A stretch of DNA of 64,000 nt from Eutreptiella sp. 'Long Island Sound 2002'. Its lineage: Eukaryota > Protista > Euglenida. Below the pieces are notes generated by a model. The model did not search any database and was not told where the DNA came from. It worked only from the letters and a program-made list of their open reading frames with translations. The position numbers were made by a program, and so were the translations under genes. Positions 11,433-63,000 of this stretch are shown in pieces; within the stretch, counting starts at the first letter, position 1, and the number at the start of each line of letters is the position of its first letter. The stretch covers positions 170,314,001 to 170,378,000 of the forward strand of contig OZ038378.1 of assembly GCA_964036045.1 (NCBI GenBank), given 5' to 3'.

Positions 11433-12455
11433 ATGGAGGCTGAGACAACTGTGAAAGCAGTATCAATACGCGGATCCCACGTTTGTTTGCCACTGTGGGT
11501 GACTGAGGGTGCAGGCTCTCCATGCCCGGCTTAAGTGACGGCTTCGGGCCCTGCACCTGAGCACGCCTGCCGCAGCCCCTGCCTCATACGGGCACGCATG
11601 CGCGTGTCTGTGCACATGCGCCTGTCCGCCCCTCTGCTCTCTGCTGCCGACAGCCCACTGTCACACACTTACAGTGGATCCCTGGGACTGCATACCCCTG
11701 GGCCGTGGCTGTCTGATATCAACAGAAACGGAAGAACCTCGGGATAGTTTTTCCCAACGCCGTTTGCCCCCCTTCCCTCGCCCCGCTTCATCCGCCTTGG
11801 GGATGGGGGTGGGAGTGGGGCGGGGGACACAATTGTGGTCGGTCCCTGATGATGGACCTCCCTGCCTGAACACTTCCACCCGAGGTTCAATGTTTTCAGG
11901 GCAAAACATTGTCACGTACGACTGCTGTACTGCAACATCCAAGAAGAGTATGTACCATTATGTACCAGTGAAAACTCTCCCAGAAATTTGTGTGGATGGG
12001 TATTTGCTACCACTCCTTCTCACTGCACGTGAGTTCCCTGAACACGGACCTCCTCACTCTCCGGCTTTTCTTTTGTTCCTTTCTTTATCATTCTTTTTCC
12101 AAAACAAAAACTCTTCCAGACAAAAGAGGAACAATGGAAGGAAAATGGGATATAATGGAGGAAAATGGGGGGAAATGGGGAATGCACGATGGAATATGTA
12201 TGAAAGTGTTCCAAGATGAAAAATAAAATGGAGACGTAGGGGAGGAAAATGGGAGGACAATGGTAGAAATATGGGACATTTTGAGACACCTTTCCCATTC
12301 TTCCTACTCCCGTTTTCCTCGTTTCCGCAGCGGCCCGGCAGCTTCCCTTACGGTTCCCACTAAAAAGCTGGTCTCCAGAGTCTCTGGACGGAAAACTGGG
12401 GGAAATCAGCGCTCCCCAGAGTCTCCGGGAATCCGGGGACCTCGGAGCACTGTGA
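11433..12455 (+). pseudogene. 5'-truncated copy of the tandem-unit gene
   Basis: Begins mid exon A (MEAETT...), with an in-frame TAA at 11427 in the unrelated left flank. Exons B-D are intact to TGA at 12455. Confidence 0.4.
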
Positions 12456-13480
12456 TCAGCTATCTGGGTGGGGGCTCCAGTGATGAAACATGTGTTGGCC
12501 TATCGGGGTTATGTGCCATGCATTGTGTGGGGGTGTTCCGCAAAGGCATACAGGGGCATCTGCCACGCCCCCTCCCTCCCCCCCCCCTCTCCCCTTGGTC
12601 ACAAGAAAATGATCCATTCAGCCCTAAACATCAGGGCCCCGTTGAAGATTCAAGCACATCCCCATTGCGTACAGAAATCCAGAACCACATTGCCTCCAGG
12701 CTGTAGTGGCCAATGCTTGGCGGTGCAGTGCCCTGTCCATTGAGTCTGTAGCGTGCAGTTTTCTCTCTAGCTCTAACCCTCCACCCCCCCTCCTCAAGCC
12801 CTGACTTCCCCAAACGCCGCCTCTACCACCAGCACCTCTCCAACAACAGGCATTGACCTTCCCAGTCCTCCAGCTGCCTGGACAGGCCGCATTTACAGGG
12901 TAGGGGGGTTGTTTTGCTGAGACCTACCCACCTGACACTTATTTTTGATATTGCGACCCATGCGCTGCCTCGCCTCCAGCCCCAAGAGGATGCCCAGCAG
13001 GAGGCCAGCTCTCAAGCATATGGGTGTCACAGAATCAATTAGAAGGCACCTTTGCTGAAGGGGAGAATCATATAGGGGGGGGGGGGTCAAAAACCAGCTG
13101 AAAAGGGCCAAAACCCAAAGCCACGTGCATGAACCCCACATGAGGATCTTAATGCTCCTGAAGTGACGTTTACACTGATATGACGTTGTTTTGACCAACC
13201 TCTGATCATGTTTTGTCGATGTTGAGCCCCATCCAAGCACCATGCAGAGCCCGACGCTATTTTCGCTTCGCAGGGCCACATGTTGAGCGGTTTTGGCCAA
13301 ACATGTGCGCCCCTCTGCAGTCCTCTGCATGTTGTGCGACACAAAAAAATCAACTTCAACGAAAAATCCATCCATCTCTATTTCGGAAAGAGGTGATCGC
13401 AGTGTGCAGGAAGCCATCCTGCAACCACTTCCAACCGCCTTACTCTCCCCCTTTCGGCCTCACAGTGTTTGCACCATCCT

Positions 13481-14728
13481 ATGCCATATGCTATCATCCT
13501 GCACAGCTCACGTCTACCCAAGTGGTCCAGTGGAAAGGTGATCGTCACTGCGCAGCTTCCCCAATGGGGGAACGCGACAGTGGGGCCCGCTATCTTAAGT
13601 TTTCGCAACACCAGCCACACCATACCGTTGGTTTCTTGGCAGCGCTTGACCATTGAGCTTGAGCTTGCAGCTGCACTTGGGCATGGGACTCTCCCGGCGC
13701 TTGACATGGAGGCTGAGACAACTGTGAAAGCAGTATCAATACGCGGATCCCACGTTTGTTTGCCACTGTGGGTGACTGAGGGTGCAGGCTCTCCATGCCC
13801 GGCTTAAGTGACGGCTTCGGGCCCTGCACCTGAGCACGCCTGCCGCAGCCCCTGCCTCATACGGGCGCGCATGCGCGCGTCTGTGCACATGCGCCTGTCC
13901 GCCCCTCTGCTCTCTGCTGCCGACAGCCCACTGTCACACACTTACAGTGGATCCCTGGGACTGCATACCCCTGGGCCGTGGCTGTCTGATATCAACAGAA
14001 ACGGAAGAACCTCGGGATAGTTTTTCCCAACGCCGTTTGCCCCCCTTCCCTCGCCCCGCTTCATCCGCCTTGGGGATGGGGGTGGGAGTGGGGCGGGGGA
14101 CACAATTGTGGTCGGTCCCTGATGATGGACCTCCCTGCCTGAACACTTCCACCCGAGGTTCAATGTTTTCAGGGCAAAACATTGTCACGTACGACTGCTG
14201 TACTGCAACATCCAAGAAGAGTATGTACCATTATGTACCAGTGAAAACTCTCCCAGAAATTTGTGTGGATGGGTATTTGCTACCACTCCTTCTCACTGCA
14301 CGTGAGTTCCCTGAACACGGACCTCCTCACTCTCCGGCTTTTCTTTTGTTCCTTTCTTTATCATTCTTTTTCCAAAACAAAAACTCTTCCAGACAAAAGA
14401 GGAACAATGGAAGGAAAATGGGATACAATGGAGGAAAATGGGGGGAAATGGGGAATGCACGATGGAATATGTATGAAAGTGTTCCAAGATGAAAAATAAA
14501 ATGGAGACGTAGGGGAGGAAAATGGGAGGACAATGGTAGAAATATGGGACATTTTGAGACACCTTTCCCATTCTTCCTACTCCCGTTTTCCTCGTTTCCG
14601 CAGCGGCCCGGCAGCTTCCCTTACGGTTCCCACTAAAAAGCTGGTCTCCAGAGTCTCTGGACGGAAAACTGGGGGAAATCAGCGCTCCCCAGAGTCTCCG
14701 GGAATCCGGGGACCTCGGAGCACTGTGA
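13481..14728 (+). CDS. Hypothetical 213-aa protein, tandem copy 1 (exons 13481-13781, 13948-14034, 14173-14301, 14604-14728)
   Basis: Three phase-1 GT-AG introns (gtgcag..ttacag; gtttgc..ttttcag; gtgagt..ttccgcag) join 642 nt into one ORF ending at TGA. Two of the three exonic differences seen between copies are synonymous (21367, 23823). The 138-nt second intron is in frame and could be retained. No homolog recognised. Confidence 0.5.
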
Positions 14729-15755
14729 TCAGCTATCTGGGTGGGGGCTCCAGTGATGAAACATGTGTTGGCCTATCGGGGTTATGTGCCATGCATTGTG
14801 TGGGGGTGTTCCGCAAAGGCATACAGGGGCATCTGCCACGCCCCCTCCCTCCCCCCCCCCTCTCCCCTTGGTCACAAGAAAATGATCCATTCAGCCCTAA
14901 ACATCAGGGCCCCGTTGAAGATTCAAGCACATCCCCATTGCGTACAGAAATCCAGAACCACATTGCCTCCAGGCTGTAGTGGCCAATGCTTGGCGGTGCA
15001 GTGCCCTGTCCATTGAGTCTGTAGCGTGCAGTTTTCTCTCTAGCTCTAACCCTCCACCCCCCCTCCTCAAGCCCTGACTTCCCCAAACGCCGCCTCTACC
15101 ACCAGCACCTCTCCAACAACAGGCATTGACCTTCCCAGTCCTCCAGCTGCCTGGACAGGCCGCATTTACAGGGTAGGGGGGTTGTTTTGCTGAGACCTAC
15201 CCACCTGACACTTATTTTTGATATTGCGACCCATGCGCTGCCTCGCCTCCAGCCCCAAGAGGATGCCCAGCAGGAGGCCAGCTCTCAAGCATATGGGTGT
15301 CACAGAATCAATTAGAAGGCACCTTTGCTGAAGGGGAGAATCATATAGGGGGGGGGGGGGGTCAAAAACCAGCTGAAAAGGGCCAAAACCCAAAGCCACG
15401 TGCATGAACCCCACATGAGGATCTTAATGCTCCTGAAGTGACGTTTACACTGATATGACGTTGTTTTGACCAACCTCTGATCATGTTTTGTCGATGTTGA
15501 GCCCCATCCAAGCACCATGCAGAGCCCGACGCTATTTTCGCTTCGCAGGGCCACATGTTGAGCGGTTTTGGCCAAACATGTGCGCCCCTCTGCAGTCCTC
15601 TGCATGTTGTGCGACACAAAAAAATCAACTTCAACGAAAAATCCATCCATCTCTATTTCGGAAAGAGGTGATCGCAGTGTGCAGGAAGCCATCCTGCAAC
15701 CACTTCCAACCGCCTTACTCTCCCCCTTTCGGCCTCAAAGTGTTTGCACCATCCT

Positions 15756-17003
15756 ATGCCATATGCTATCATCCTGCACAGCTCACGTCTACCCAAGTGG
15801 TCCAGTGGAAAGGTGATCGTCACTGCGCAGCTTCCCCAATGGGGGAACGCGACAGTGGGGCCCGCTATCTTAAGTTTTCGCAACACCAGCCACACCATAC
15901 CGTTGGTTTCTTGGCAGCGCTTGACCATTGAGCTTGAGCTTGCAGCTGCACTTGGGCATGGGACTCTCCCGGCGCTTGACATGGAGGCTGAGACAACTGT
16001 GAAAGCAGTATCAATACGCGGATCCCACGTTTGTTTGCCACTGTGGGTGACTGAGGGTGCAGGCTCTCCATGCCCGGCTTAAGTGACGGCTTCGGGCCCT
16101 GCACCTGAGCACGCCTGCCGCAGCCCCTGCCTCATACGGGCGCGCATGCGCGCGTCTGTGCACATGCGCCTGTCCGCCCCTCTGCTCTCTGCTGCCGACA
16201 GCCCACTGTCACACACTTACAGTGGATCCCTGGGACTGCATACCCCTGGGCCGTGGCTGTCTGATATCAACAGAAACGGAAGAACCTCGGGATAGTTTTT
16301 CCCAACGCCGTTTGCCCCCCTTCCCTCGCCCCGCTTCATCCGCCTTGGGGATGGGGGTGGGAGTGGGGCGGGGGACACAATTGTGGTCGGTCCCTGATGA
16401 TGGACGTCCCTGCCTGAACACTTCCACCCGAGGTTCAATGTTTTCAGGGCAAAACATTGTCACGTACGACTGCTGTACTGCAACATCCAAGAAGAGTATG
16501 TACCATTATGTACCAGTGAAAACTCTCCCAGAAATTTGTGTGGATGGGTATTTGCTACCACTCCTTCTCACTGCACGTGAGTTCCCTGAACACGGACCTC
16601 CTCACTCTCCGGCTTTTCTTTTGTTCCTTTCTTTATCATTCTTTTTCCAAAACAAAAACTCTTCCAGACAAAAGAGGAACAATGGAAGGAAAATGGGATA
16701 CAATGGAGGAAAATGGGGGGAAATGGGGAATGCACGATGGAATATGTATGAAAGTGTTCCAAGATGAAAAATAAAATGGAGACGTAGGGGAGGAAAATGG
16801 GAGGACAATGGTAGAAATATGGGACATTTTGAGACACCTTTCCCATTCTTCCTACTCCCGTTTTCCTCGTTTCCGCAGCGGCCCGGCAGCTTCCCTTACG
16901 GTTCCCACTAAAAAGCTGGTCTCCAGAGTCTCTGAACGGAAAACTGGGGGAAATCAGCGCTCCCCAGAGTCTCCGGGAATCCGGGGACCTCGGAGCACTG
17001 TGA
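15756..17003 (+). CDS. Hypothetical protein, tandem copy 2
   Basis: Same exon structure shifted by 2275 bp. One GAC>AAC change in the last exon. Confidence 0.5.
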
Positions 17004-18030
17004 TCAGCTATCTGGGTGGGGGCTCCAGTGATGAAACATGTGTTGGCCTATCGGGGTTATGTGCCATGCATTGTGTGGGGGTGTTCCGCAAAGGCATACA
17101 GGGGCATCTGCCATGCCCCCTCCCTCCCCCCCCCCTCTCCCCTTGGTCACAAGAAAATGATCCATTCAGCCCTAAACATCAGGGCCCCGTTGAAGATTCA
17201 AGCACATCCCCATTGCGTACAGAAATCCAGAACCACATTGCCTCCAGGCTGTAGTGGCCAATGCTTGGCGGTGCAGTGCCCTGTCCATTGAGTCTGTAGC
17301 GTGCAGTTTTCTCTCTAGCTCTAACCCTCCACCCCCCCTCCTCAAGCCCTGACTTCCCCAAACGCCGCCTCTACCACCAGCACCTCTCCAACAACAGGCA
17401 TTGACCTTCCCAGTCCTCCAGCTGCCTGGACAGGCCGCATTTACAGGGTAGGGGGGTTGTTTTGCTGAGACCTACCCACCTGACACTTATTTTTGATATT
17501 GCGACCCATGCGCTGCCTCGCCTCCAGCCCCAAGAGGATGCCCAGCAGGAGGCCAGCTCTCAAGCATATGGGTGTCACAGAATCAATTAGAAAGCACCTT
17601 TGCTGAAGGGGAGAATCATATAGGGGGGGGGGGGGGTCAAAAACCAGCTGAAAAGGGCCAAAACCCAAAGCCACGTGCATGAACCCCACATGAGGATCTT
17701 AATGCTTCGGAAGTGACGTTTACACTGATATGACGTTGTTTTGACCAACCTCTGATCATGTTTTGTCGATGTTGAGCCCCATCCAAGCACCATGCAGAGC
17801 CCGACGCTATTTTCGCTTCGCAGGGCCACATGTTGAGCGGTTTTGGCCAAACATGTGCGCCCCTCTGCAGTCCTCTGCATGTTGTGCGACACAAAAAAAT
17901 CAACTTCAACGAAAAATCCATCCATCTCTATTTCGGAAAGAGGTGATCGCAGTGTGCAGGAAGCCATCCTGCAACCACTTCCAACCGCCTTACTCTCCCC
18001 CTTTCGGCCTCACAGTGTTTGCACCATCCT

Positions 18031-19278
18031 ATGCCATATGCTATCATCCTGCACAGCTCACGTCTACCCAAGTGGTCCAGTGGAAAGGTGATCGTCACTG
18101 CGCAGCTTCCCCAATGGGGGAACGCGACAGTGGGGCCCGCTATCTTAAGTTTTCGCAACACCAGCCACACCATACCGTTGGTTTCTTGGCAGCGCTTGAC
18201 CATTGAGCTTGAGCTTGCAGCTGCACTTGGGCATGGGACTCTCCCGGCGCTTGACATGGAGGCTGAGACAACTGTGAAAGCAGTATCAATACGCGGATCC
18301 CACGTTTGTTTGCCACTGTGGGTGACTGAGGGTGCAGGCTCTCCATGCCCGGCTTAAGTGACGGCTTCGGGCCCTGCACCTGAGCACGCCTGCCGCAGCC
18401 CCTGCCTCATACGGGCGCGCATGCGCGCGTCTGTGCACATGCGCCTGTCCGCCCCTCTGCTCTCTGCTGCCGACAGCCCACTGTCACACACTTACAGTGG
18501 ATCCCTGGGACTGCATACCCCTGGGCCGTGGCTGTCTGATATCAACAGAAACGGAAGAACCTCGGGATAGTTTTTCCCAACGCCGTTTGCCCCCCTTCCC
18601 TCGCCCCGCTTCATCCGCCTTGGGGATGGGGGTGGGAGTGGGGCGGGGGACACAATTGTGGTCGGTCCCTGATGATGGACCTCCCTGCCTGAACACTTCC
18701 ACCCGAGGTTCAATGTTTTCAGGGCAAAACATTGTCACGTACGACTGCTGTACTGCAACATCCAAGAAGAGTATGTACCATTATGTACCAGTGAAAACTC
18801 TCCCAGAAATTTGTGTGGATGGGTATTTGCTACCACTCCTTCTCACTGCACGTGAGTTCCCTGAACACGGACCTCCTCACTCTCCGGCTTTTCTTTTGTT
18901 CCTTTCTTTATCATTCTTTTTCCAAAACAAAAACTCTTCCAGACAAAAGAGGAACAATGGAAGGAAAATGGGATACAATGGAGGAAAATGGGGGGAAATG
19001 GGGAATGCACGATGGAATATGTATGAAAGTGTTCCAAGATGAAAAATAAAATGGAGACGTATGGGAGGAAAATGGGAGGAAAATGGTAGAAATATGGGAC
19101 ATTTTGAGACACCTTTCCCATTCTTCCTACTCCCGTTTTCCTCGTTTCCGCAGCGGCCCGGCAGCTTCCCTTACGGTTCCCACTAAAAAGCTGGTCTCCA
19201 GAGTCTCTGGACGGAAAACTGGGGGAAATCAGCGCTCCCCAGAGTCTCCGGGAATCCGGGGACCTCGGAGCACTGTGA
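18031..19278 (+). CDS. Hypothetical protein, tandem copy 3
   Basis: Same exon structure shifted by a further 2275 bp. Confidence 0.5.
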
Positions 19279-19900
19279 TCAGCTATCTGGGTGGGGGCTC
19301 CAGTGATGAAACATGTGTTGGCCTATCGGGGTTATGTGCCATGCATTGTGTGGGGGTGTTCCGCAAAGGCATACAGGGGCATCTGCCATGCCCCCTCCCT
19401 CCCCCCCCCCTCTCCCCTTGGTCACAAGAAAATGATCCATTCAGCCCTAAACATCAGGGCCCCGTTGAAGATTCAAGCACATCCCCATTGCGTACAGAAA
19501 TCCAGAACCACATTGCCTCCAGGCTGTAGTGGCCAATGCTTGGCGGTGCAGTGCCCTGTCCATTGAGTCTGTAGCGTGCAGTTTTCTCTCTAGCTCTAAC
19601 CCTCCACCCCCCCTCCTCAAGCCCTGACTTCCCCAAACGCCGCCTCTACCACCAGCACCTCTCCAACGACAGGCATTGACCTTCCCAGTCCTCCAGCTGC
19701 CTGGACAGGCCGCATTTACAGGGTAGGGGGGTTGTTTTGCTGAGACCTACCCACCTGACACTTATTTTTGATATTGCGACCCATGCGCTGCCTCGCCTCC
19801 AGCCCCAAGAGGATGCCCAGCAGGAGGCCAGCTCTCAAGCATATGGGTGTCACAGAATCAATTAGAAGGCACCTTTGCTGAAGGGGAGAATCATATAGGG

Positions 19901-20761
19901 TGGGTTTGGTTTGGTTTGGGTCAAGGCCTGTGCCGGACGCCCTGGCCCATGGTCAGCACTCGCCTTTGGGCCGACACGACTGGGCTAGGCGAATCGCGGT
20001 TGTCCGGTCCCAAGGCCTGCCGGACTGTTGACCGCCCCCGTACCCCGTGGTGGCACACACGGGAGGGAGATGCCGCCGTGCCTGTGTGTGTGGCGCGCGC
20101 GGGGCAGGAGGGCGGGGCGTGCATGCTGGTGGCGCTCGCAGGGCATGACGGGTCACACGGCTGCGCCACGCCTGGCCCTGCCCGCTGGCGCCGGTGCCGC
20201 TCCAGTGTTTCTGGTTTCTCCCGCTGCGGCTTGGTCCGTCCGTGTCGCCGCTTGTAGTGGCGTCCCGGCTGTTCGTGTGGTCGTCGGGTGTGAACCAGGG
20301 TCCGCCACCACCGGGCCCTGGCTGCTTGTGGTGGAGGCGTGTGGGGGGGGGGGGGGGGGGGCGTGTGGGGGGTTGTGTGATGCCTGGTGCTCCAGGCCCC
20401 GGCAGGGAGGCCATGGGAGCCTGACGCTGAGCCCGCCGGGGGAGTGTTCGGACTGGACACGCCGCCTCCCGGTCATTGACATGCTGCCAGCGGCCCCACG
20501 ACTGCATGAGGCACGGGGGCGCGCTCCCTGGGCGCTCGACTGGGGGGGTCCACCCCTCCTGACTGCTCTAGGCACTGGTGGTGTTGTCGTGGACTGGACC
20601 ATCCGCCCACGGCGCTGAGGGACGGCAGGAGGAGGGGCTCCAGGGCGCGCTGAGCGCTGCCCTGCCCTGGAGCCTGCCCGGGCTCGGGGCCTGGGTGGCG
20701 GTGCTACTGCCCGCGTAAACGGGGGGGCCCAGAGGGCACACCACCCGAGTGACCGCTCCGT
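19901..20761 (-). mobile_element. 861-bp GC-rich SINE-like or 5'-truncated non-LTR retroposon with (CCAAA)n tail
   Basis: Present in one unit only. Flanked by the 10-bp direct repeat tcatataggg (19891-19900 and 20762-20771). The minus-strand 3' end is cccaaaccaaaccaaaccca. Confidence 0.8.
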
Positions 20762-34559: not shown

Positions 34560-34988
34560 TTAACAAAATAAAAGGCACTGCCCCAGGGCCATGCGGCAGG
34601 GCCCTCTCCAAGCCCACGCCCAGTTCGGCCAGCCCATCCTTGAACAGCCGCCGTGGCATTCTGCTGCGCTACCGTCACTGCCAGGGCAGTCCCTGACAGC
34701 AAGAGAAGAACAAAACTTGTGGTGTCCAGTTCTCGAAGCCAGGCAGCTGCAGCGGAAACCACGGCGGTTGGAGAACCCGCGGACTTGCGGGTAACCGACG
34801 GCGGCTGCAAAATAGCCGAGGCGCAAAGGAATCGACGGCGGTTGGAGGGCAACCTACGGCGGCTGCAGGGTAACCGAGGGCGGTTGCAATGTAGCCGACG
34901 GTGGTTGTAGGGTAACCGACAGCCCCCAGTTGAGGGTCGCCGACAGTCCCCAGTTGAGGGTCGCCGACAGCGGTTGGATGGGAACTAG
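34560..34988. repeat. Repeat-family copy (cggcggttgg subrepeats) immediately downstream of the Hog gene
   Basis: Contains gtcactgccagggcagtccc (34674-34693), an exact inverted match to 38289-38308. Confidence 0.75.
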
Positions 34989-34996
34989 GCCGGTCC

Positions 34997-37931
34997 TTAA
35001 TGCAATGAACAAAAAAACCTGTCAGCGTCCTTAGGGACTGCCCCGGTCACGTCCGCCTCCCCCGCAGTCTTTGTGGCCTCGTGGCATGAGTGGAGCCATC
35101 GCAGCCGCTGCGCCACCGACATCAGCAGCCGCTCCACCCTCGTCACGCTGACGGCCTTGTCACGCGGGGCGCCCCGCACCACGTGCGGCCCGGTGAGGCC
35201 GCGCCACGCCCACACGAACCAGTGCGCGCTGGTGTGGGGCATTCCGGCGTAGCAGGACGTGAGCAGCCCCTCGGACGTGGCGGTGCTCATGCCGGCCAAC
35301 AGAAGGCCCGCGGCCGTAACAGGGGAGTGGATGGCGTCCTCGTAGACCAACCGGGCCCAGCGGACCGGCACGGGCCGCCCGTGGCCCTGCACCAAATGCA
35401 CTGGCGCCCCAGTGGCAATGGAGTCCAGGAGCTGGGCGGCGCTGATGTCGGTCGCGCGCGCTGTGGCCGGGTCCTGCACGAAGATGCGGTGGTCAGGGGT
35501 GATGGTGACCGTGGCGTTGGCCGTGTGGATCTCCACGAACAGGAAGGCCGGACCAGGGGAGAACTCCCGGTGGGAGAGGTCCACGACGGGGGAGAAGACG
35601 GGGGCGTGTGAGGCAGGATCGTAGCCAACTACAAGCTCATCCTCCACCTCGACCACCGCGATGGGGACGCTCTCGATGGCCTCGCCGTGGTCTGGGCCGT
35701 CCGTCCGCCTGAGGGCAAGGGTAGAGGCGAAGAGGCACAGAGAGGGGCACGGGCAGGATCAGGAGCAGAGGCAAGGATGGAGACAGTGGCACGGGAAGGG
35801 GCAGGGGCAGCAGAGGTAAACACTACACCTGGCGGTGGTATCACCACTCGTCTCCACTGCCACCACCACCCTTGATGCGCAAGGGTGGTATGACGCAGCT
35901 CCGCAAAACGCATATATGCGATCAACCCGCCCCCCGACTCGGCAAACCTGGCGGCCAACGAGTCGGCAAGCGAGTCGGCGACGTATTTTACCCGGCTTGG
36001 AGGGCGGGATCAAAATTATGGAGGTTGGCACAAAATAAGGCCTATTATGGGGTGTTAGCTGTGCAGGTATCATTCCATTTTGCATGGCACTTCTCAATCA
36101 GTGCTGCACCCAAATTTTTGGTTTTTGGCAACTTCGCCGAATTTCACCGACTCGTTGGGCCCCACGCCGACTTGGGGGGGGGGGGGGGGGGGGTTATGCA
36201 CCAGCAGGGGATGGCCTTACCCAGGCAGCACCCAGGCGATGCTCAGGACCCACACAGCCGGCTCTTCAGCGGTGGCATTACCCTGCACGCTCCAAGCCAC
36301 CAACAGCCTCTTCGTGCATGAGGGCGGGATTACGCCGAGCACTGGCGATTGCAAAGGCCCACTGTGCCACCCTTTGGCGGTGGTGTTTCCTTGCACTCCA
36401 ATAGCAACCGGCAACCTTGTGCCAGACGAGGGTGGAATATGCCATTCATGCATGAGAACAATGACCCATTCTGCCACACATTAGGCAACAGTCTTACAGC
36501 TGGTCTCTGCTTCCACCATCAACCTTGCGCAAGGGTGGTATTACACAGCTCCACACACACATCGACCTCCACACTGTCTGCTCCCAGCTCCTTTTGGTAC
36601 CGTCGCCCCTCGTCGTGCTCGCTAGTGCTACCATCATCCTGCTCCGTCAGGTACTGCTGCCCCGCACCACGCATACTCGTCACTCCACTGCTCCATAGCT
36701 CCTTCCCGCACTGCTGCTCGCAGCACGGGCAGAGGCACAGGAACAGGCAGAGGCAGAGTCCAAGGTGGAGGCAGTGGCAGGGGTAGAGGCGGAAGCCAAG
36801 GCCGAGGCAGAGGCAGAGGCACAAGCAGAGGCACAGGCAGAGGCACAGGCAGAGGTGCAGAGGCAAAGGCAGAGGCAGAGGCGGAGAGAGGGGGGGGGGG
36901 GCGCGGAGGAAAAGAGGCATGGGCAGGAGCAGGGGTAGTACCAGCAGCAGGGGCAGAAGCGAACGCAGGGGCAGAGGCCAACACATAGAGAGCGGGAGGG
37001 GTGGTCCGCGAGCGACCAATGAATTGCTGCCGGTTACTGGCCACGCGTCGTCGGTTGACCAACTGCAGTTGGTTGACCGCCAACGGCTGTCACATTCGAC
37101 ATCGGGGAGGTCTGAGAACGAGGTTCTTTGGCCTTTGATCATGGAGGATGAGGAGGAGGAGCTGCTACTCTCCGTCGCTGATCCTGAGAGCTGAACCGGG
37201 TGCAGGCAGCACGGCACTCCCCGTGTCTCGACTTCGACAATACCGGGGTGACTGACACTCATGGCATCGGAGGGCGTAGGTGCAGTACGAACCCTCCCAA
37301 CGCCATCCTGATGCTATTCCACGCAGGTGGAGGTGGAGACAGAGGGGTAGGGGCTAGCGCAGGCCTGTAGACAAGTCTCTTCCGGCTCCCGCGGTCACTC
37401 TGGACACTCTCGTCTGGGAAAGCCTACCGTTTCCTGCCCACGGGCTCAAAGGGGGTGGCGTTGATCAGCAGCCCAGCTGCATAACCACTGACCCATGCAC
37501 CTCCATGGCCCAGCGCACGGGCAGGGGCAAGGGGCCAGGCGCAAGGACACAGACCTCCGAGCCACACGTGTGTGCCCCGAAAAGCATGGCACTTGCGTAT
37601 TGCAGAGCCATTCGGTGCAGCCGGTCCAGACCGTCTGCGAAGTGAAGGCGCAGCTGATGGCGGCGGTGGCGTCGGTGGTACTGGAGCACGAGGTGTTCGT
37701 GAGCTGCAGCATATCTGTGAAGATTTTGTTGGACTCGGGGCACGTGCAGTAGCGGGTCGAGTCGGTCCTGGCGCTGGCGCTGGCGCTGGCAGAGGCTGCG
37801 GATCTGGAATGGGTGCGGCGGGGTTTCAGGGCGGGGGAACGCTCTTCTGGTTCTTCAGCTTGCGTCAGCTTGTCAGCTTGTGCCGCAGCACAGAGCAGCA
37901 CCACCAACATGGTGAGATGCACAGCAAACAT
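34997..37931 (-). CDS. Secreted Hedgehog-related Hog-domain (Hint + sterol-recognition region) autoprocessing protein, 362 aa; exons 37931-37555 and 35708-34997
   Basis: A phase-2 GT-AG intron (AG|gtctgt ... ccctcag|G) joins VP-CFSGHTRVARR to RTDGPDHGEAIESVPIAVVEVEDELVVGYD...VFSPV. Hint motifs: CF start, TITPDH (TxxH), HSPVTAAG, SCYA, and the Hh-like AHWFVWAWR region. N-terminal hydrophobic signal peptide and a six-Cys domain. Confidence 0.88.
35980..37262 (-). mobile_element. Decayed gag-like retroelement remnant within the Hog gene intron
   Basis: Low-complexity 247-aa ORF, followed in another frame by CLMCGRMGHCSHA* (about 36446-36487), a CCHC knuckle whose last Cys codon is TGA. A weak TSIILIPPSKPGK RT-like motif lies at about 35990-36030. 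Confidence 0.4.
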
Positions 37932-38056
37932 GGCTCTGCAGAGGACAGGATCATTGGAGGGATAGCACCTGTATGCCCAGTGCTGCCGAGTGCCTGCCTG
38001 TTGGTCTACGCACACAAAGATAGCAGTGATGTGGCATTAACGGACGCCCTTGGGGA

Positions 38057-38400
38057 CTAGATACTGTCCAACCACCGTCGGTGACCCTCCGACCACCGTG
38101 ACCCTTCAACCGCCGTTGGTTCCCCTTCAACCGCCGTCAGTGATCCTGCGCCCACCGTCGGTTACCCTCCAACCGCCGTCAGTTACTCCGGAACCGGCGT
38201 GGACAACCCTCTAGCTGCCGTCGGTTACCCTCCTAACTGCCTGGCTGTGTGGAGTGCATACAGAAGCATTTTTCTTTTTCTGCTGTTTGGGACTGCCCTG
38301 GCAGTGACTGTGGTGTGCATGGGTGTGGCACACAGCCCTCAGGCTGCACTTCTGCAGGCAATTCTCGAAAAGTCAACGGGCCATTGGACCAATGCAATCA
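38057..38400. repeat. Inverted copy of the 34560-34988 repeat family, upstream of the Hog gene
   Basis: aaccgccgtc subrepeats. gggactgccctggcagtgac at 38289-38308. Inner end ctagatactgtccaacc mirrors ggttggatgggaactag. Confidence 0.75.
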
Positions 38401-54014: not shown

Positions 54015-57000
54015 ATGGAGCTCATCGGAGGTTTGCTTCCGGGGAAGGGTTCAATCGGAGCCCCTCGGATGGCTACCGCTCGAGGGAGTCGTTCTCGTAC
54101 ATTGCAACTCATGGTTGACAACCTCAAGCCCAAATCGGAAGATTTGAGGTTTGCCCCACGTGATTGTTGAGTTCGTTGCCGATTTCGATACCGAAATCAT
54201 TGGCCACACTTGTTGAGTTGCTGCGGATTTCGGGAACAAGTGGCTCGAGCAATCCTTTCACAACCAAAACTTGCAAGAAGTGATTGAAAGGATTTAACTA
54301 TTCGGAGGCATCGCACACATTGCTTTTCCGTAGATTGAAAGCCGAACGCGACTTGCTTTCTTTCGTTTTGGAGGAGCTTCGTGGATCTCCACAGAACTTC
54401 ACAACCACTTTGGACGAGTTGAACGGTATCATTCATCAACAAGTGAACTCCCAAGTATGTTGTTGTGTGGGGCAACCAATTTAGATACACGACGTAACTT
54501 AACTTGTCCAAATCCTTCAATCCAATTTTTGGCACATGTGGTTCGCTACTAGTTGTACTTGATGGCCTCTAGTATCCATTGCTTTCGCCGCTGCATCATT
54601 TCTGGGGTGTTCTCGCGATATGTTTTTTGTTGTGGTAGGAGCAAGCGGAGTTGATGGCGGGAATTTTGGCTATTGACGTGCTTTTGCAAGTGGAGAACGA
54701 TGCCACACAACTCGCCATTTTCGGCTCTTATTTACGTTTGGCCCTTATCAATAGCGACCAAAGCACCGTTCCCGCCGTGGCATCGGTTTTGGGAAGACTC
54801 GTGAAGTGCGGTGGGATCCTGACCGCGGACGTTGTCGATCGAGAGGCGCGGAAGGCATTGGATTGGTGCGTCATGTTTCCTCTCTCTAGCTTCGCGGACG
54901 GGGGTCAATGCGTCAATCGTGTCCTTTTCCCCCGCATAGGCTACGATCGTCGGATACCAAGGACGCAAAGAAATATGCGGCGGTCGTGGTTTTAAAGGAG
55001 TTGGCCAATAACGCACCAACGATTTTCTATAATTTGGTGGAACACTTCACTTCGTGGATTTGGTACGTTCGTAGTCCGTTTGAGGGTGGTTTGAGGGAAA
55101 CGGTGTAGGAGATGGTGAGAATGAATGGTCTTGTGCCCGCCATAGTAGCCAATGCTCTGCCGATTCCTTGGCCCCGCAAACAAGTTTTGGGGCGTCGCGA
55201 CTTGGAGATAAGCTTGCCACCGTCGGTCGGCCTTCTCAATGGTATCATCATGATTGGTCCCATGTGTAGGTCTGCCGTGCGTGATACAAGCCTTCAAATT
55301 CGCGAAGGGGCTGCTGAAGCTGTTCGGTCCGTCCTAGAGATCATGGCCGAACGGGATTCCCGACACAACACGATTTGGTATTTTTTTGTTTTGACGACTG
55401 CGACTTGCACCTCTGCTACACGGTTGCCGTCAAAGATAGCGAGAATTGAATATGATGGCGTTCCCTCCCATGCACAATTTCTTGTTCGTCCATATTTGGG
55501 ATAGCTTGAAAAATATGCGTTGGCAACTACATGTCCGTTTGGTTTTTGGTCCGTTAATGGTGTTGTGATGAACGTGAAAGCGAAGGTTGTTAAGCGGGGC
55601 ACGAGACATCGTGATGTGCGTTGCCACGGTTAGTACCTCAATGCATTTGTGAACAATTGGTTTTGTCTACGCTTTTTCCCTCTTCCTTGTCTCGTTTGTT
55701 TCTTATACTCAAGGTACGATCATTTTTACGACAAGAGCCTAGAAGGCCTAGAGATGCGCTCCAACGAGTGTGTGCACGGGTCCCTCCTCGTCATTGCGGA
55801 GATCTTCAGAGCTCATCCCCCTCTCATCAATACAAAATATGAGATGATTTGTCAAAAAATCTTCAAAATACGGGATCACCCCAATAGATACGTGAAACAA
55901 GGGGTCATCGAGATCATCCCGTTCATGGCGAAGTACCGCGTGGAGACTTTCTGCCAAAAATTTGGGAATACTGCGATTCAGTACATCCTGGGTGTGGTCA
56001 AGAAGGATGCTGACAAGGTTTGCAACCCGGCGTATGCGGCGTTGGCGAAAATCGTCCGCATTGTGGGGAGCACGTTCCTACAGCCGTACGTGGAGCAGAT
56101 GCTGCAGCTAATCCAACAGACGTTGTCGTACGCGAAGGGTAAGCCGCACGTCCCAGAGGCATTGACTTGCCTCGCGAGCATCTGCACCGTCGTGAATGAG
56201 TACGCGGTGGAACAGCAGGTGGTGGCTCTCATGGACGACATCTTCAAGTGGCCCCTGACCATCACCCTGGCAGAAGCGTTGGCGGAGATCTCCCCGGCGT
56301 TCCCGACATTGGTGCGGCAGTTTCAAAAGAAGTTGCTGAACACCATCAGCTTGGCGCTGTGCACAGCCCCGTTCGGCTGCGGGCCTGCCACGTATGCCTC
56401 GGGCTATGACCGGACCCGGGCTATTACTGCGATGGGCCCCCTGGTGCCGGCATTCTCCCCCGTACATCAGACTCGGCCGGACGCGCAGGTGCCGCTTTTG
56501 CCTTTGCACAATGGCGTGTCCTTGCGTCCTCTGCTGCAACCGCTTGTGCCTCTGCGTCGGACACTTTGACTCGCTGTCACAGCTGCTTGCGCCTGCGTGT
56601 ACCACTTGTCCCTGCGGTTTTTTGCTCTGTGCCCTGACACTGCTTGCCCTGTGACGACAGGCGGACACCTCTCGAACACAGCACGAGAAGGTCCTCCTCG
56701 CGCTGCGCATGCTGCGGATGTACAATTTCGACCAGAATTCGCTCATTGAATTCGTGCGGGACGCCATCACGAACTTCATTGATGATGAGAGCCCCGCCAT
56801 CCGCAAGGAAGCCGCCTTGACGTGCTGCAAATTGGCCATTGACGAGCCGCCTGAAACCAACCAGAACGTTTTCGTGGATTCTCGGTACCGTAACCCGGAG
56901 CTGGCACAGTTCCCCCTCGTCCACTTTAACAGTAACGGCGGGGACCTCAAGTATCAGGTCCCCTTTTCTTGCTTCTGCTGTTGGGGCCGTTGTGGGTGCA

Positions 57001-60000
57001 GGGACGGTGCCAATCAGCGGCTCGCCGTTATTACCTCGTGAGCGATGTCAGCCGTTTGCAAGAGGGACGGAATCGTCACATTAAGAATCGTTTCGCCTCC
57101 TGGATGTGTGGGTGTGGTATCGGTGGCGTACGTACACGCGCAAACTAGCCCGCACGCGCCAAAAACCACAATGCGTTTCCGCTAAAACCAGTGTTGCAAT
57201 TTGGTGTACATGGACGGATACGGGGACGGAGTTTCGATGACCTTCCTGGTATGGAATTCCTGAAGTTTAAATCTACCCGGAGCCATCCGTAATCTGCATC
57301 GAGTGCATCCCTCACCCCTCGGTCCTGCTCAGAATCCAACGTGGCCTTGCTTTGTCATTCCCTCTATCTCCCTCTGTTTCATCCTCCTTTTTCAACGATT
57401 CAATTCATGTCCTACAGGAGCATTCCGTGCAGCCTCAGGATTTCGTGTTGTCCGAGATCCTGCAACGTCTCTTGGGTGCAGGGCTGAGTGACCCGGAGCC
57501 TGATATCCGGCTCGCAATTTTCGCGTCCTTGGACAACCGATTCGACCACAGCCTCTGCGTTGGGGACAAGCTCAAGTACTTGATGATCGCTGTCAACGAC
57601 GAAGATCGCAGGGTTCGCGAGGTCGTCATCTCCATCCTGGGAAGGCTAAGCCCAATCAACAGCTCCGGCATCTTGCCCGTGCTGCGGCAGACCATGTTGC
57701 AGGTGTGTGTTTCATGAGAAGGGTCGCGTGTTGTGATGGTCCTGCTTCCATGCCTGCATTGCCGATGTTTCAGACCATGGCACGTCGCCCCACGCTGACC
57801 CATACCCCACGAAAGGATCCATAACCAATACATTACGCACCACTCCGTACACTGTTGTACACTACAATTAATTCGAGGTATCACCAGTCCTGCTACAGGC
57901 CCAATGGATTGTTCCGAGGTATCTGTATCGCCATGAGACCCTATTGATTCATCATACCATCCTTAGTGGTCGCGATTGACCACCACGCCCCACGCAACAC
58001 ACTCCACGCCACACATCACACGCGACACCCGGTACACGTGCAGTCAAAAGTTACAGGAAAGGAAACCAAGGCGTAAGCGTCCGGACATTGCCCTTGGCTG
58101 AGCAGCCCCTGGTCCCATTTTTTGGGGGGCACTCATTAGCCCTTTCCTTTGCACTTGACGATGGGAAAAAGCAGTTCTTCTGGCAGCCGTTAATACGCCC
58201 GCGTGCCTTGAACCATGTCCACGCAATGAATCACCCTCTCGCGGCTCGGTGAAGCCGTCTGAGGGATGTGTAGCGTTTGCGCGTCCATTTGAGAACCATT
58301 GGACAGCTCTGCGGGGCCTTGAAAGCTGAGTGCCGAACAGGGCTGTATTAAATTGCAGATGGACACAAACAAACAGAACTCCCCACTGCAGACCACCCAT
58401 GGTCGCAGGTGCAGGTGCCAACCGCAAGTTTCGGAGTCGCTGCTCGACCAGCGTCAGAGTAAAACCGGGCCTCCGAACACTCCTCAAGACCCTAAGGTCG
58501 ACACCAATATTAGGAAACACACGGAGTCGTGCGCTGGTGTGTGTCGGCGAGTGATCCTGAGAAATAGGACTCATGCTTCGAAATACCATGCAGCCGAGTG
58601 TGGGCCCCAACCATTTCGTGTCCTGAAGCCTCGATGTGTCAACACTGTAGTGCCAAGGCGACAATATGTGGACTTTCCCTTACACCATATCCCATGCTCC
58701 TCTGCAGCTTCTGGCGGAGCTGGAGAATTCTATCGACAGCCGACAGATCGAGTCCGCGGCAGGAATGCTCGCAGCTCTCATTCAGTCCGCGCCGAGCACA
58801 GCACAAATCTACGTTACCAATATCGTGAAAGTGCTGAAGCGCCGTATCACGGATCCGTCGCCGCAGGTTGTCGTGGCCATATTGCAGGTGCTGGGGAACT
58901 TGGCGACCGCAGTGGGCCCCCCGATGATGGAGTTCATCGATTTCTTCTGCCCCATCGTCATTGATATCTTGAATGACAGGTATTGGGCGCACGGTTGGAT
59001 TCAGAGTCGCCTCTTTGGCCCGCAAACAGGGAGGCGGAAGGTGGTTGTTGGAACCGGGTGTTGCCATCCTTCGGGGACACAAGACGAGGCAGCACAACCC
59101 AACGCACAGCACCATCCAGCACACCACACCACACCACACAACACAACACAACACAACACAACACAACACAACACAACACAACACAACACAACACAACACA
59201 ACACAACACAACACAACACAACACAACACAACACAACACAACACAACACAACACAACACAACACAACACAACACAACACAACACAACACAACACAACACA
59301 ACACAACACAACACAACACAACACAACACAACACAACACAACACAACACAACACAACACAACACAACACAACACAACACAACACAACACAACACAACACA
59401 ACACAACACAACACAACACAACACAACACAACACAACACACCACAACACACCACACCACACCACACCGGTGCCCAGCGTGTGGGACCCCGTGCACTCCAG
59501 GTGGGCCCGCAGCATAGAGGGGGTCCGCAGGGCCGCTGCCCACTGCTCTAGCACTGCTAGCTCCCATAGCTGGTGGCGCACCGGGGCCGCCCGCCCGCCC
59601 ATCTTCCGGTCGAGCCACGCCGCGAGCCGGTGTGGTGTGGTGTGAGTTCATCCGCCATGTCGTAGAGGAGTCCATCAGGGTCTGGTACGCTCACGCAAAG
59701 GCGCGCGCCACATTGCTGAAGGCCTGCCTGGGCCTGGGCAGCACGATGGCGTGGGCGTTGCAGGAGCTACATCTGCACCAACAAGCGGAAAGAGAGGGGG
59801 TGCAGCGGGAGCTCCTGGAATAACGACGGTCGCCACGGGGGTGCCAACCAGGTTTTTCCAGACTCCCCCTCTCTCCGCCAAAGATATACATACACACACA
59901 CTGCGCGCACACAACACACACAGCCCCGCTTTACCTTTGCCCTTGGGTAGACATCCCGGCCTTTTGCCATTTGGTAACAGCGCCTTCGGCACACCACACC

Positions 60001-63000
60001 ACACCACACCACAACACAACACACCACACCACACCACACCACACCACACCACACCACAGCACAGCACAGCACAGCACAGCACAGCACAGCACAGCACAGC
60101 ACAGCACAACAACCCTAGAAAGTCATTTTGCATACGCACAACTTGCCTGAACTGTTCAGCCGTAGTTCAACGGCTCGGTTGGACAGCCATTGAACAGCTG
60201 CAGGAACTGTGATACTTCAAGAAGCCACTAGTTGTCATGGGTAGCTTGTGTTTTGATTGCATAACAGGGCAGCAAATGTCTTGAGCAATATCGCCAGTTT
60301 TTGAATAGTCAAAAACGGCGACGGTACGGTAAGATATGAGCGGGACAAGTTGTTTGCCACCCAAAGCATGCGGGTAGTCCTTAAACGGCTGCCGGAGCTC
60401 CAATATGTTTATGATCCGATTGTGGCCATTCGCCGCTGGAAATCTGATTGCCCGATAGTACAGCACATCTCTTGAACTGCATCGCCAGCTTTTGAATCAT
60501 CAGAATCGGACACAGTACGCCTAAGATATGAGTCCGACAAGTTGCTTGCCACAGAAGCAGTTGAGCACCGGTTGATCAGGTAAACCGCGCGGTTTCGCGC
60601 AAAACTGCTGTTCAACGGCTTTTTTTGTACATGTGCAAAATGACTTTCTAGGGAACACAGCACAGCACAGCCAGCACAGCACAGCACAGCACAGCACAGC
60701 ACAGCACAGCACAGCACAGCACAGCACAGCACAGCACAGCACAGCACAGCACAGCACAGCACAGCACAGCACAGCACAACACAGCACAACAAAGCACAAC
60801 ACAACGCAGCACAACGCAACACAACGCAACACAACGCAACACAACTCACATCGCACACGACACAACACAGCACAACACGACTCTACGCAATTTTGTGGGC
60901 TGTTGTGCAGGTCTTCGAGCGCGAAACGGGAGGCGTCGCTGCGGTGCCTCGGCCAGCTCTGTCAGAGCACGGGATACGTCATGCGGCCATACCAGCAGTA
61001 CCCAAAACTGTTCAACAATTTGAAGGCCATGTTTCAGCAGGGCAACAACGAGTCAACTACGTCCCGGCAGGAGCTGGTGCGGGTGCTGGGCATCCTTGGG
61101 GCGTACGACCCCTTCAAATTGCTGTTCTTGCAGTCGGAGGATGGAGAGAAGCAGAAGGTGCTTGCTCTTTGACGTTGATATGTCGTAGATTGTGTTTCGT
61201 TCTGTATTGGTGGGTGTATCACAAAAACATGTTCACCTTCAAAGAGCATGCTCCAGAACCTCATTGTCAGCTTCACTGTTATGATTGCTTTTTGCGGCAA
61301 CCCACCCAATCAGCGCGGTGGACGAAGCAGAAGCCGACAACGTCTTCGGTTGGGTTCTAAAGGCGTCAAAGAGATGGCGAGACAGGGTTATGGGGTTGCG
61401 CCCCTGGAAAGTCCTCAGCAACGAACGCTTCACTGCAATCCACGGCTTTTCGATCTTCCACAACCCTCAGTAGCCTGTGGCAGCTGCCCTCAGATACCAC
61501 AACAATCTTCCATAAACTCACCACACCCTTTTGACCTCTCTCTACGTCCCCCCACCAGTCCTCCACAACGTTTCGCAACTTCGCACAACCTACTGCAATT
61601 TCTTACAAGGCTCCAAACCCTTCCTGCATAACATCCAACCATCTTCAATGAGCAATCATTTGGAAGCTTGCAAGTTGGCAAGTTGCATTAATAAGAGCAC
61701 TGTTCCCGTGCCCAAGTTTCTGCCTATGACCTAGTATACATTGACACCGTCTCAAGCAATCGGGTGACGTCTTGCCGAAAGGCGTGGCTCATGACACCCC
61801 TCTGCAACCCTGGATCCTTGACAAGCCACTCCTCGGCAATATTGCATCACCCTCAACAACTCGTCAACCATCTTTCCCCTTTCTCATACTGGTAAACACC
61901 CTAGGAAATCCTCAAAACCCGTCAACCAGTCACCTTCCACAACCTCCACAACTACGTGAAATCCTCCATAACTCTCAACCCTGAGCCAATCCTCCAGAAG
62001 GACGCATCAAGTCACAACCCTCTACAACCTTCAATGACTGTCAATAAAGCTCAAAAAACCCTGTAAAATACATTGGGCCCTAACACTGCCCTGGACAACC
62101 GTCAATGACACTGCACAACCGTCATCAACCATCCACAGCTCTCAACAAGTCTCAATCAGCCTCAACGTTTTCTCAAAATACCCCACCCCTATTCTATTCT
62201 GTCTTCTGCACCCTTAACAAGCTTCTGTGGCCATAATGCTCCTTAATCCTCCGCAGCTTTGCCACTCTTCAACAATCTTCAACAATCTCCCACAACCTAA
62301 TAAACAGTCTCCAGCCATCACCCTCTGAAATTCTCAAAAATCCTCAATCATCAAGCGCCAACTCCCTTGAACAGGCAACCACCTTTGAACTGTCAACCCA
62401 CTGCTCCGTTACGGAAAATGTTTCAGGCTGCTGTTGTAGGAGCTCGGAAGCGGGGTGGTCTCCAAAAGGGCCGTGTTCGCAGATCCGCCCCCTCGTATGG
62501 AGCGGCTTGTGCTTGAAAATGCCGCTCAACGGCATCGGAACAAACACCCTCCGAAAGGAAGGGATCATCCTGGAACGCCTCACGCAGTGGTACAAGCATA
62601 TACCCCTGTGTTTACGATGGACACCCTGTGAATGCCATCCGCCGGGGGGGCACCATAGTGCAGACCATCCGCCCCCCCCCGCCCCGGGGCACGGCGCCGC
62701 ACTCCCACGAAAGAAATGGCCTGATTTGAGTTACAGACCAACACTCACGAACATAACAATGGGGGGAATGGGACAGAAAGCACGTCTTGGCAGTTCTTGC
62801 CGCAGTTGCCGCTGCACTGCTTGCCACGTCGCCTGTGACTTGCATTATGGAGGCTTTGGACGTTTTCCTGTCATATCGTCGTTCTCTCAGGTACGCTTCA
62901 CTCACATTTATACAGTTTTGTTCGATTTTCCGTCCCTTTCCCCCCCCGCCCCCGCCACTGCCCTGTAAGCAAACCTTTTTTCCACCACTATTTTGAGAAG

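Follow-up and report, generated by a model that had tools for sequence, protein, structure and literature searches.

The locus described here raises the question of whether two reading frames on the minus strand, lying about 1.8 kb apart, belong to one gene for a Hedgehog-type autoprocessing (Hog) protein, and of what such a protein would release. Judged from its sequence, the locus is a real and single-copy two-exon nuclear gene of a euglenid host, and we regard its membership of the Hog family as highly probable. The best explanation as a whole, a secretory Hog-family precursor of 362 residues that is predicted to cleave itself, is one that we favour with appreciable room for doubt. The features of the locus within the 64-kb stretch of DNA that was analysed (the window) are as follows.

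34671 to 34985, no strand: left inverted-repeat arm, made of a locus-specific segment of about 70 nt and a 21/24-bp minisatellite
34997 to 35245, minus strand: C-terminal tail of 82 residues, resembling an adduct/sterol-recognition region, and the stop codon (helix alignment, AF2)
35246 to 35708, minus strand: Hint core of exon 2 (Pfam Hint, 41.1 bits; phmmer against the PDB; alignment; Foldseek)
35709 to 37554, minus strand: conventional GT-AG intron of 1,846 nt (sequence reading)
37555 to 37931, minus strand: exon 1, with signal peptide, spacer, Cys-rich head and the first 10 Hint residues (translation, GC3 0.74)
37557 to 37586, minus strand: start of the Hint module, CFSGHTRVAR (pattern match to CFPGSATV of Hh, P0003, and CFHGEELV of L001)
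37587 to 37751, minus strand: Cys-rich head, residues 61-115, the presumed released product (translation)
37752 to 37874, minus strand: low-complexity spacer, residues 20-60, acidic and then rich in Ser, Ala and Arg (translation)
37875 to 37931, minus strand: signal-peptide-like N-terminus, residues 1-19, MFAVHLTMLVVLLCAAAQA, with a cleavage-like site between AQA and D (hydropathy, AF2)
37936 to 37950, minus strand: putative acceptor for spliced-leader trans-splicing, consisting of a run of pyrimidines and then CAG, 4 nt 5' of the ATG
38062 to 38311, no strand: right inverted-repeat arm, mirroring the left one and lying about 130 nt 5' of the ATG

In the predicted splice, exon 1 (37931-37555, 125 codons plus 2 nt) is joined in frame to exon 2 (35708-34997) by removal of the intron, whose donor GT lies at 37554-37553 and whose acceptor AG at 35710-35709 is preceded by 15 bases of which 13 are pyrimidines. 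The exon phases are compatible, with AG and G forming Arg126, and the predicted product of 362 codons runs from the first in-frame ATG at 37931, upstream of which there is no other, to the stop codon at 34999-34997. Only 35708 offers a strong polypyrimidine acceptor, and of the GT donors in phase 37555 comes first. GC3 is 0.74 in exon 1 and 0.86 in exon 2 whereas it stays flat at about 0.6 in the intron, which argues for a maintained coding constraint in the exons. The splice signals, phases and GC3 agree with the preliminary description of this DNA, which had proposed a split gene with the catalytic Cys-Phe about 1.8 kb from the rest of the Hint domain. The length of the intron falls within the range of E. 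gracilis introns, which have a mean of 1,027 nt and are conventional in 80% of cases (PMC6366073). Euglenozoan mRNAs are trans-spliced (PMC6242988), and the exact E. gracilis spliced leader is present in 3,309 copies in the genome, which marks the host as a euglenid of the E. gracilis type. The intron also holds a (GGCAGA)n array, a 49-nt direct repeat pair and a homopolymer run that is C on the gene strand and G on the plus strand.

Exon 1 ends with exactly the 10 residues that are missing from exon 2, in the pattern CF.G...V, and motif A is thus present, conditional on the predicted splice. Cys116 (37586-37584) is the predicted nucleophile, with Pro115 at position -1, and the Hint module is interrupted by the intron 10 codons after it. 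The 37555/35708 join produces a 9-residue insertion exactly at the exon junction relative to Hh and L001; the alternative pair 37551/35680 would restore Hh-like spacing, splice alternatives having been compared through phase arithmetic alone. When all six-frame pieces of the window were scored with a 32-position HMM of the Hint N-terminus, the profile did not discriminate between them and did not single out exon 1.

Exon 2 by itself belongs to the Pfam Hint family according to its profile match, scoring 41.1 bits against PF01079 (cut-off 29.7 bits, E = 2e-10) over positions 39-179 of the 213 in the profile. In a six-frame scan of the whole genome the same match has E = 2.1e-7, and it is one of just two Hint matches in the 2.28-Gb assembly. 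The TPDH sequence at 35500-35489 (TxxH, Thr196/His199) aligns with TPAH of Drosophila Hh, and SCYA at 35257-35246 retains the motif J Cys (Cys278). In an alignment with nine Hog relatives, the His of TxxH, the Ser of SCYA and four other columns are invariant, and the Tyr of SCYA is nearly so. The general-base position, occupied in Hh by Asp303 (D46), is taken by His172 (35572-35570); a His is also found in this column in most of the non-metazoan relatives aligned. Phmmer against the PDB with exon 2 returned 6TYY, 6TD6 and 1AT0, all of the Drosophila Hedgehog autoprocessing domain, and His172 aligns with the His of the D46H mutant in 6TYY. The engineered D303H swap keeps Drosophila Hh-C active (PMC9163320). 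Foldseek likewise gave 6TYY and 1AT0 as the best matches for the exon 2 model, with inteins behind. The Hog module with TxxH and SCYA that had been proposed from the letters is supported by profile, sequence and fold comparison.

The assignment of a Hh-like sterol-recognition tail holds in part. The first tail helix, SAHWFVWAWR, aligns with LAHWGLAPMR of Hh and is motif-K-like, but the Hh HWY motif (motif L) of the second helix is absent from the 82-residue tail, which makes the tail an 'adduct recognition region' of unknown specificity in the terms of Bürglin (PMC2362128). AF2 gives helices in the tail with low confidence.

The signal peptide, the KPRR-bearing spacer, the six-Cys domain with its NTS sequon and Cys116 can all be read in the exon 1 translation as first described. 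Residues 1-18 have a mean hydropathy of 2.1-2.4, and AF2 predicts a helix at residues 2-17. The dibasic KPRR lies at residues 36-39 inside the spacer, and pLDDT is below 50 across residues 22-62; the AF2 models of the two exons are of low confidence (pLDDT 52 and 54). The head contains six cysteines, at positions 62, 64, 82, 94, 105 and 110, and the NTS sequon at residues 79-81. No Pfam family, including the Hedge (HH-signal) domain, matched exon 1 at E <= 1, and a word-index search with exon 1 found no relatives of the head at E <= 10 among candidates of 69-219 aa. Searches of the ESM Atlas and of the genome itself found none either, nor did direct BLAST against the N-termini of the nearest Hog proteins. 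The N-terminal partner has no detectable relatives within the scope of these narrower searches, the search of 1.84 billion proteins having used exon 2. Paralogs sharing the Cys domain, which the preliminary description had suggested looking for, were not found in the genome.

The gene is single-copy in the genome, which has no second copy of either exon, and its closest Hint relatives reach only 27-34% identity. Phmmer of exon 2 against the 1.84 billion proteins gave 10 matches and no ortholog, with amphioxus and vertebrate Hh among the nearest relatives. The top non-self match, P0002, was rejected as spurious, being a discoidin/ephrin-receptor-like repeat protein matched in seven weak stretches. 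A word-index search with exon 2 returned the window's own ORF alone. A control search with an mTOR exon likewise returned only the window's own ORF, so that the absence of a spliced product in the word search says little about expression; full-length mTOR lies outside the length window, which makes this an imperfect control. The control suggests that the database has no Euglena proteins derived from transcripts within this size range. The supplementary files of the 2019 E. gracilis transcriptome, which may be truncated, contain no 'hedgehog', 'Hint' or 'PF01079' entry, and Rfam gave no match within the 64-kb window.

The gene is bracketed by the two inverted-repeat arms, which share 75% identity over about 300 columns. 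The 21/24-bp minisatellite within them is a genome-wide family whereas the outer arm segment is not. The idea that the gene is the cargo of a multi-copy transposon was discarded, as neither the exons nor the outer arm segment has further copies.

Two other accounts of the locus question the gene itself. It is improbable, in our judgement, that the locus is an unexpressed or decaying relic, a Hog gene trapped between the repeat arms and possibly brought there by an old foldback-type element. The tight bracketing by mirror-image arms, the left beginning 12 nt past the stop codon, would suit such a history, as would the single copy, the distance of all relatives (at most 34% identity) and the Pro at position -1. 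However, both exons are open, the catalytic motifs are all intact, the splice signals are preserved, and the GC3 difference between exons and intron speaks for coding constraint rather than decay. The two exons might also be unrelated, with the ORF that ends in the Cys-Phe motif lying there by chance and the real first exon of the Hint gene missing or situated elsewhere. Although the 10-residue overlap is too short for a statistical HMM score and the junction creates the insertion noted above, we consider this very unlikely, given that CF.G...[VIL] occurs just twice in the approximately 128,000 codons of all six frames of the window and that this occurrence precedes exon 2 on the same strand and in a compatible phase, its ORF being high in GC3 and opening with a signal peptide. 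There is no other candidate between the Cys-Phe motif and exon 2, and the exon 2 frame is closed by a stop codon that lies some 20 codons before the acceptor.

On the preferred reading of a two-exon secretory Hog precursor, the signal peptide would carry the protein into the ER, where the six-Cys head would form its disulfides and be N-glycosylated at Asn79. The Hint module would then perform an N-to-S acyl shift at the Pro115-Cys116 bond, and the thioester would be resolved by a nucleophile held by the tail, which may be a sterol, another lipid alcohol or simply water. The released head would have about 96 residues (20-115), or about 76 if KPRR is also cut, and an adduct, if one is used, would sit on the C-terminus of the head and keep it at the cell or flagellar membrane. 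We think that the protein probably cleaves itself. Cleavage at Cys116, as first proposed, agrees with the Cys-Phe motif, but a Pro before the Cys slows N-terminal cleavage in inteins, with a 1000-fold attenuation in one and a 'slow' class in another (PMC8891592, PMC11842431). A lipid or sterol adduct on the product is a tentative suggestion that may well prove wrong, and a sterol in particular is a guess because the HWY tail motif of Hh is absent. More speculative still, and unlikely as a complete picture, is that disulfides staple the head into a helical hairpin peculiar to euglenids, which would carry a sterol or another membrane lipid on Pro115 through an ester bond and be exposed on the flagellar or pellicle membrane, rich in sterols. 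The Hog enzyme that makes it would be a natural 'His-base' form with a sterol range of its own. If this were true, Discoba would have its first demonstrated example of a Hedgehog-style lipidated ligand or surface tag.

With gene and self-cleavage unchanged, the thioester could also be resolved by water, in which case the Hog module would act as a one-shot maturation protease and the product would be a soluble, unlipidated Cys-rich peptide. Such an outcome has some weight, though we lean clearly against it. It fits the loss of the Hh-specific HWY motif and the observation that non-Hh tails differ and have been named adduct recognition regions of unknown specificity (Bürglin, PMC2362128); on the other hand, plain hydrolysis needs neither an 82-residue tail kept after SCYA nor its Hh-like first amphipathic helix, and the His retained where Hh activates the sterol hydroxyl (PMC9163320) would be superfluous. 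The destination of the protein could be questioned as well. Proteins of the secondary plastid of Euglena carry a bipartite presequence, a signal peptide followed by a hydroxylated stretch rich in Ala and Arg, and RTHSRSAASASASASARTDSTR after the signal peptide resembles a transit peptide. We nevertheless give plastid targeting hardly any credence, since the stretch opens with the acidic run EEPEE, which is atypical of transit peptides, and hydropathy reveals no second hydrophobic stop-transfer segment. Classical marks of the secretory pathway are present instead in the six-Cys head, the sequon for N-glycosylation and the Hog architecture.

In the literature consulted, we found no report of a protist Hog protein with an experimentally determined adduct or biological role, which bears on whether lipid tagging by Hog modules predates animals. 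E. gracilis makes sterols; it is also cultivable and has a chromosome-level genome. Cas9 RNP editing is feasible in E. gracilis (PMC13142649). The chromosomes appear to carry just this one Hog gene, which makes a clean knock-out combined with a mass-spectrometry test for the adduct feasible. The natural combination of a His general base with Pro at -1 is in addition a variant to set against engineered Hh-C mutants.

Compared with known systems, the preliminary description of a candidate undescribed system was overstated. A secreted, lineage-specific and often Cys-containing N-terminus followed by a Hog module is the described rule in protists, with Jakoba libera Hog1, Cryptosporidium Hog and the Hogs of red algae and moss as examples, in a survey whose text does not mention euglenids (Bürglin 2008, PMC2362128). 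The architecture has thus already been described for protist Hogs, and the discovery of the gene is modest. The euglenid protein shares with them the signal peptide, a short Cys-bearing N-terminus without similarity to known domains and, of the Hog motifs, A (CF), B (TxxH) and J (SCYA) together with a K-like helix, and the jakobid J. libera belongs to the same supergroup, Discoba. It differs in keeping the motif J Cys, which many non-metazoan Hogs have lost, in the intron that splits the Hint module, and in a head that matches none of the N-termini compared. Inteins and bacterial intein-like (BIL) domains have the Hint fold and the N-S acyl shift chemistry predicted here in common with it. However, Pfam intein models did not match the euglenid protein, which stops 82 residues past SCYA and has neither a C-extein nor a junction of Asn plus nucleophile at its C-terminus, and SCYA and the tail are Hog-specific. 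The warthog, groundhog and quahog proteins of nematodes resemble it in joining a novel Cys-containing secreted head to a Hog module, but their heads are dissimilar (no Pfam family matched exon 1) and the nematode Hh-related families are large whereas the euglenid gene is single-copy. Against animal Hh-C, identity is about 25-34%, and the euglenid protein lacks both the Hedge domain and HWY, has His for Asp303 (a natural counterpart of the engineered D303H) and Pro for Gly at -1, and carries the 9-residue insertion after the first strand. Among solved structures, Drosophila Hh-C (1AT0, 6TYY, 6TD6) is nonetheless the best match by both sequence and fold; the two have Cys-Phe, TxxH and SCYA in common, and their first tail helices align in AHW...R.

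The split minus-strand gene proposed in the preliminary description can be joined in frame from two exons of compatible phase into a predicted spliced product of 362 codons. The signal-peptide-like start, KPRR spacer, six cysteines, NTS sequon and Cys116 that it named are all read in the translation of exon 1.

37931-37555, minus strand: exon 1, starting at the first in-frame ATG of the ORF as read in the window
Start of exon 1: hydrophobic N-terminus, MFAVHLTMLVVLLCAAAQA
After the N-terminus: spacer, acidic and then Ser/Ala/Arg-rich, with KPRR inside
After the spacer: 55-residue stretch with Cys 62, 64, 82, 94, 105 and 110 and the NTS sequon
Directly after this stretch: Pro115-Cys116-Phe-Ser-Gly-His-Thr-Arg-Val
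35708-34997, minus strand: exon 2 ORF, about 1.85 kb downstream of exon 1, with the remainder of the Hint module and an 82-residue tail

Without splicing, the exon 1 frame reaches a stop 40 codons on. At the predicted junction, the AG at 37556-37555 closes exon 1 before the donor GT (37554-37553), and the acceptor AG (35710-35709) is followed by the G that opens exon 2 and gives Arg126. This donor is the earliest in-phase GT after the CF motif. The acceptor lies some 20 codons past the stop closing the exon 2 frame, and no other AG in the region follows a strong pyrimidine tract (13/15 here). Compared with Hedgehog and the second Hog gene of the assembly, a nine-residue insertion, RRRTDGPDH, falls exactly at the predicted exon join; an alternative pair, 37551/35680, gives Hedgehog-like spacing yet has a poor acceptor context. 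The same architecture is predicted under all junction alternatives, the exact junction itself being a prediction. Given that 80% of E. gracilis introns are conventional, with a mean length of 1,027 nt (PMC6366073), one GT-AG intron of 1,846 nt is ordinary. Four nucleotides upstream of the ATG, a pyrimidine run with CAG looks like a spliced-leader acceptor, and the exact 24-nt E. gracilis spliced leader (query from PMC6242988) occurs in 3,309 copies in the 2.28-Gb assembly (reversed control, 0), which confirms a euglenid host.

Each gene-model search used one exon as query. Exon 2 alone scored 41.1 bits against Pfam Hint (curated threshold 29.7; E = 2e-10; profile positions 39-179 of 213), which bears out the proposed Hint membership. 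In an alignment with nine Hog relatives, exon 2 picks up the Hint module at about residue 11. The ten residues that it lacks follow the pattern CF.G...V in Hedgehog and other Hogs, and this pattern stands exactly at the end of exon 1, one of just two occurrences in the six frames of the 64-kb window (~128,000 codons). GC at third codon positions reaches 0.74 in exon 1 and 0.86 in exon 2, against a flat 0.58-0.65 across the three phases of the intron. Because the 10-residue piece of exon 1 gave no significant score with a short Hint N-terminus HMM, what ties the exons together is the convergence of these features rather than one statistic.

The top solved-structure sequence matches of exon 2 are the Drosophila Hedgehog C-terminal domains 6TYY (E = 0.006), 6TD6 and 1AT0. 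A fold search with its poor AF2 model (pLDDT 52) returned 6TYY and 1AT0 first and inteins next. An exhaustive phmmer search with exon 2 against 1.84 billion representatives (E <= 1e-3) gave just nine non-self matches. Seven of them are PF01079 Hint proteins with 26-34% identity, comprising several metagenomic Hogs as well as a vertebrate-type Hh-C, a Dhh-like protein from amphioxus and a fusion of trypsin with Hint. Two repeat proteins, P0002 and P0008, make up the rest and were treated as spurious. P0002 (1747 aa; seven discoidin (F5/8 type C) and eight ephrin-receptor-like repeats) was the top non-self match, and its score was dismissed as noise summed over seven weak stretches against exon 2 residues 92-155. 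Six alignment columns are invariant: the Asp of VEDELVV, a Phe, the TxxH His, two Gly and the Ser of SCYA. Both motifs named in the preliminary description, TxxH and SCYA, are present in exon 2. Hedgehog proper was rejected for lack of a Hedge domain (Pfam), and an intein for lack of a C-extein.

The head of the protein has no detectable relatives in the searches that follow. Exon 1 had no Pfam match at E <= 1, no word-search match (E <= 10, proteins of 69-219 aa) and, whole or as residues 56-117, no ESM Atlas neighbour; the head resembles neither the N-termini of the nearest Hog relatives nor that of the second Hog. Paralogs sharing the Cys-rich domain did not turn up in the genome, and neither exon has a second copy there. 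A single-sequence AF2 model, weak at pLDDT 54, hints that a signal helix and a disordered spacer precede two helices (69-83 and 88-111), which the cysteines could staple together. A control search suggests that the databases hold no euglenid transcript proteins; since, in addition, the exhaustive query was exon 2, conservation of the head in other euglenids could escape detection, and the head may be conserved there.

The assembly has a single other Hint match, a Hog gene of lower GC and without introns on the unplaced 22.8-kb contig C1294 (6872-7867). It encodes 331 aa with a signal peptide, a Cys-rich head that differs from this one, CFHGEELV and TPEH. Within its first 10 kb, C1294 carries a 330-bp repeat that recurs only on other small contigs (from C142 upward) and never on the chromosomes, so this contig may derive from another organism present in the assembly. 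Separately, a 5.5-kb Logan contig (SRR22500536) carries, at 1086-3021, two tandem Hedgehog-type Hint protein genes 14 nt apart. Their proteins (321 and 318 aa) have a signal peptide, a Cys-rich head and C[FM]PG, and with PIN/VapB toxin-antitoxin genes adjoining, the locus has the look of a bacterial setting for secreted proteins of Hog-like type. The protein P0006 matches PF01079 at E = 3e-29.

The gene lies in a GC-rich island (0.61-0.63 against ~0.5), with these repeats in and around it.

34671-34985 and 38062-38311: mirror-image arms tight around the gene, ~250-300 bp each, 75% identity
34671-34721 and 38261-38311: 51-nt core of the locus-specific outer arm segment
35857-35905 and 36507-36555: intronic 49-nt direct repeat pair with a hairpin-like core
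36171-36188: intronic homopolymer run of ~15 nt, C on the gene's strand (G on the plus strand)
36728-36886: intronic (GGCAGA)n array, ~26 units

The inner part of the arms is a 21/24-bp minisatellite, common genome-wide and forming kb-long arrays elsewhere (e.g. C23:31.63 Mb and C1111). The arms could have arisen by an old inverted duplication, or they could be what is left of a foldback-type element; a multi-copy cargo transposon was rejected on the single-copy exons and the locus-specific outer segment. The intron repeats may be traces of small inserted elements. Elsewhere in the window we observed three further loci.

3393-4691, minus strand: 432-aa ORF with a CCHC zinc knuckle (PF00098, E = 1.4e-6), probably a gag-like retroelement part
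11433-20700: tandem array, period ~2,275 bp, whose repeated 181-aa ORFs (11674, 13947, 16222, 18497) have no Pfam match
55649-63641, plus strand: mTOR-type kinase gene exons, with weak HEAT/importin-like repeats (55649-56569) and PF11865 mTOR_dom (63069-63641, E = 3e-20), broken up by long (ACACA)n and (CACAG)n microsatellites at 59.1-60.9 kb

We infer the following processing as a whole. The precursor would enter the ER via its signal peptide, where the head would form disulfides and be glycosylated. An N-S acyl shift at Pro115-Cys116, aided by Thr196 and His199, would then give a thioester, to be resolved by a nucleophile that the tail and His172 position, releasing a head of 96 residues, or of 76 if the KPRR site is cut as well. 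The main chemical worry for cleavage is Pro at position -1, with which one intein cleaved 1000-fold more weakly (PMC8891592) and another was 'slow but complete' (PMC11842431).

The first interpretation was largely right but over-sold. The gene adds a euglenid member to the protist Hog family, which was already known and in which an orphan Cys-rich head is typical. Being single-copy and experimentally tractable, it lends itself to the question of what is attached by non-animal Hog domains, and why. By the terms of Bürglin (PMC2362128), the protein has, as judged from its sequence, a bona fide Hog domain with a putative adduct-recognition tail. With Hedgehog it has in common the CF.G...V pattern. 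After SCYA, SAHWFVWAWR aligns with LAHWGLAPMR of Hedgehog and is a motif-K-like stretch; motif L (HWY) of Hedgehog was not found in the tail, so the proposed Hedgehog-like sterol-recognition tail holds in part. Hedgehog also differs in its general base, Asp303, a column occupied by His in the euglenid protein and most non-metazoan relatives. This His aligns with that of the engineered D46H/D303H enzyme, which keeps its activity and tolerates a wider range of sterols (PMC9163320).
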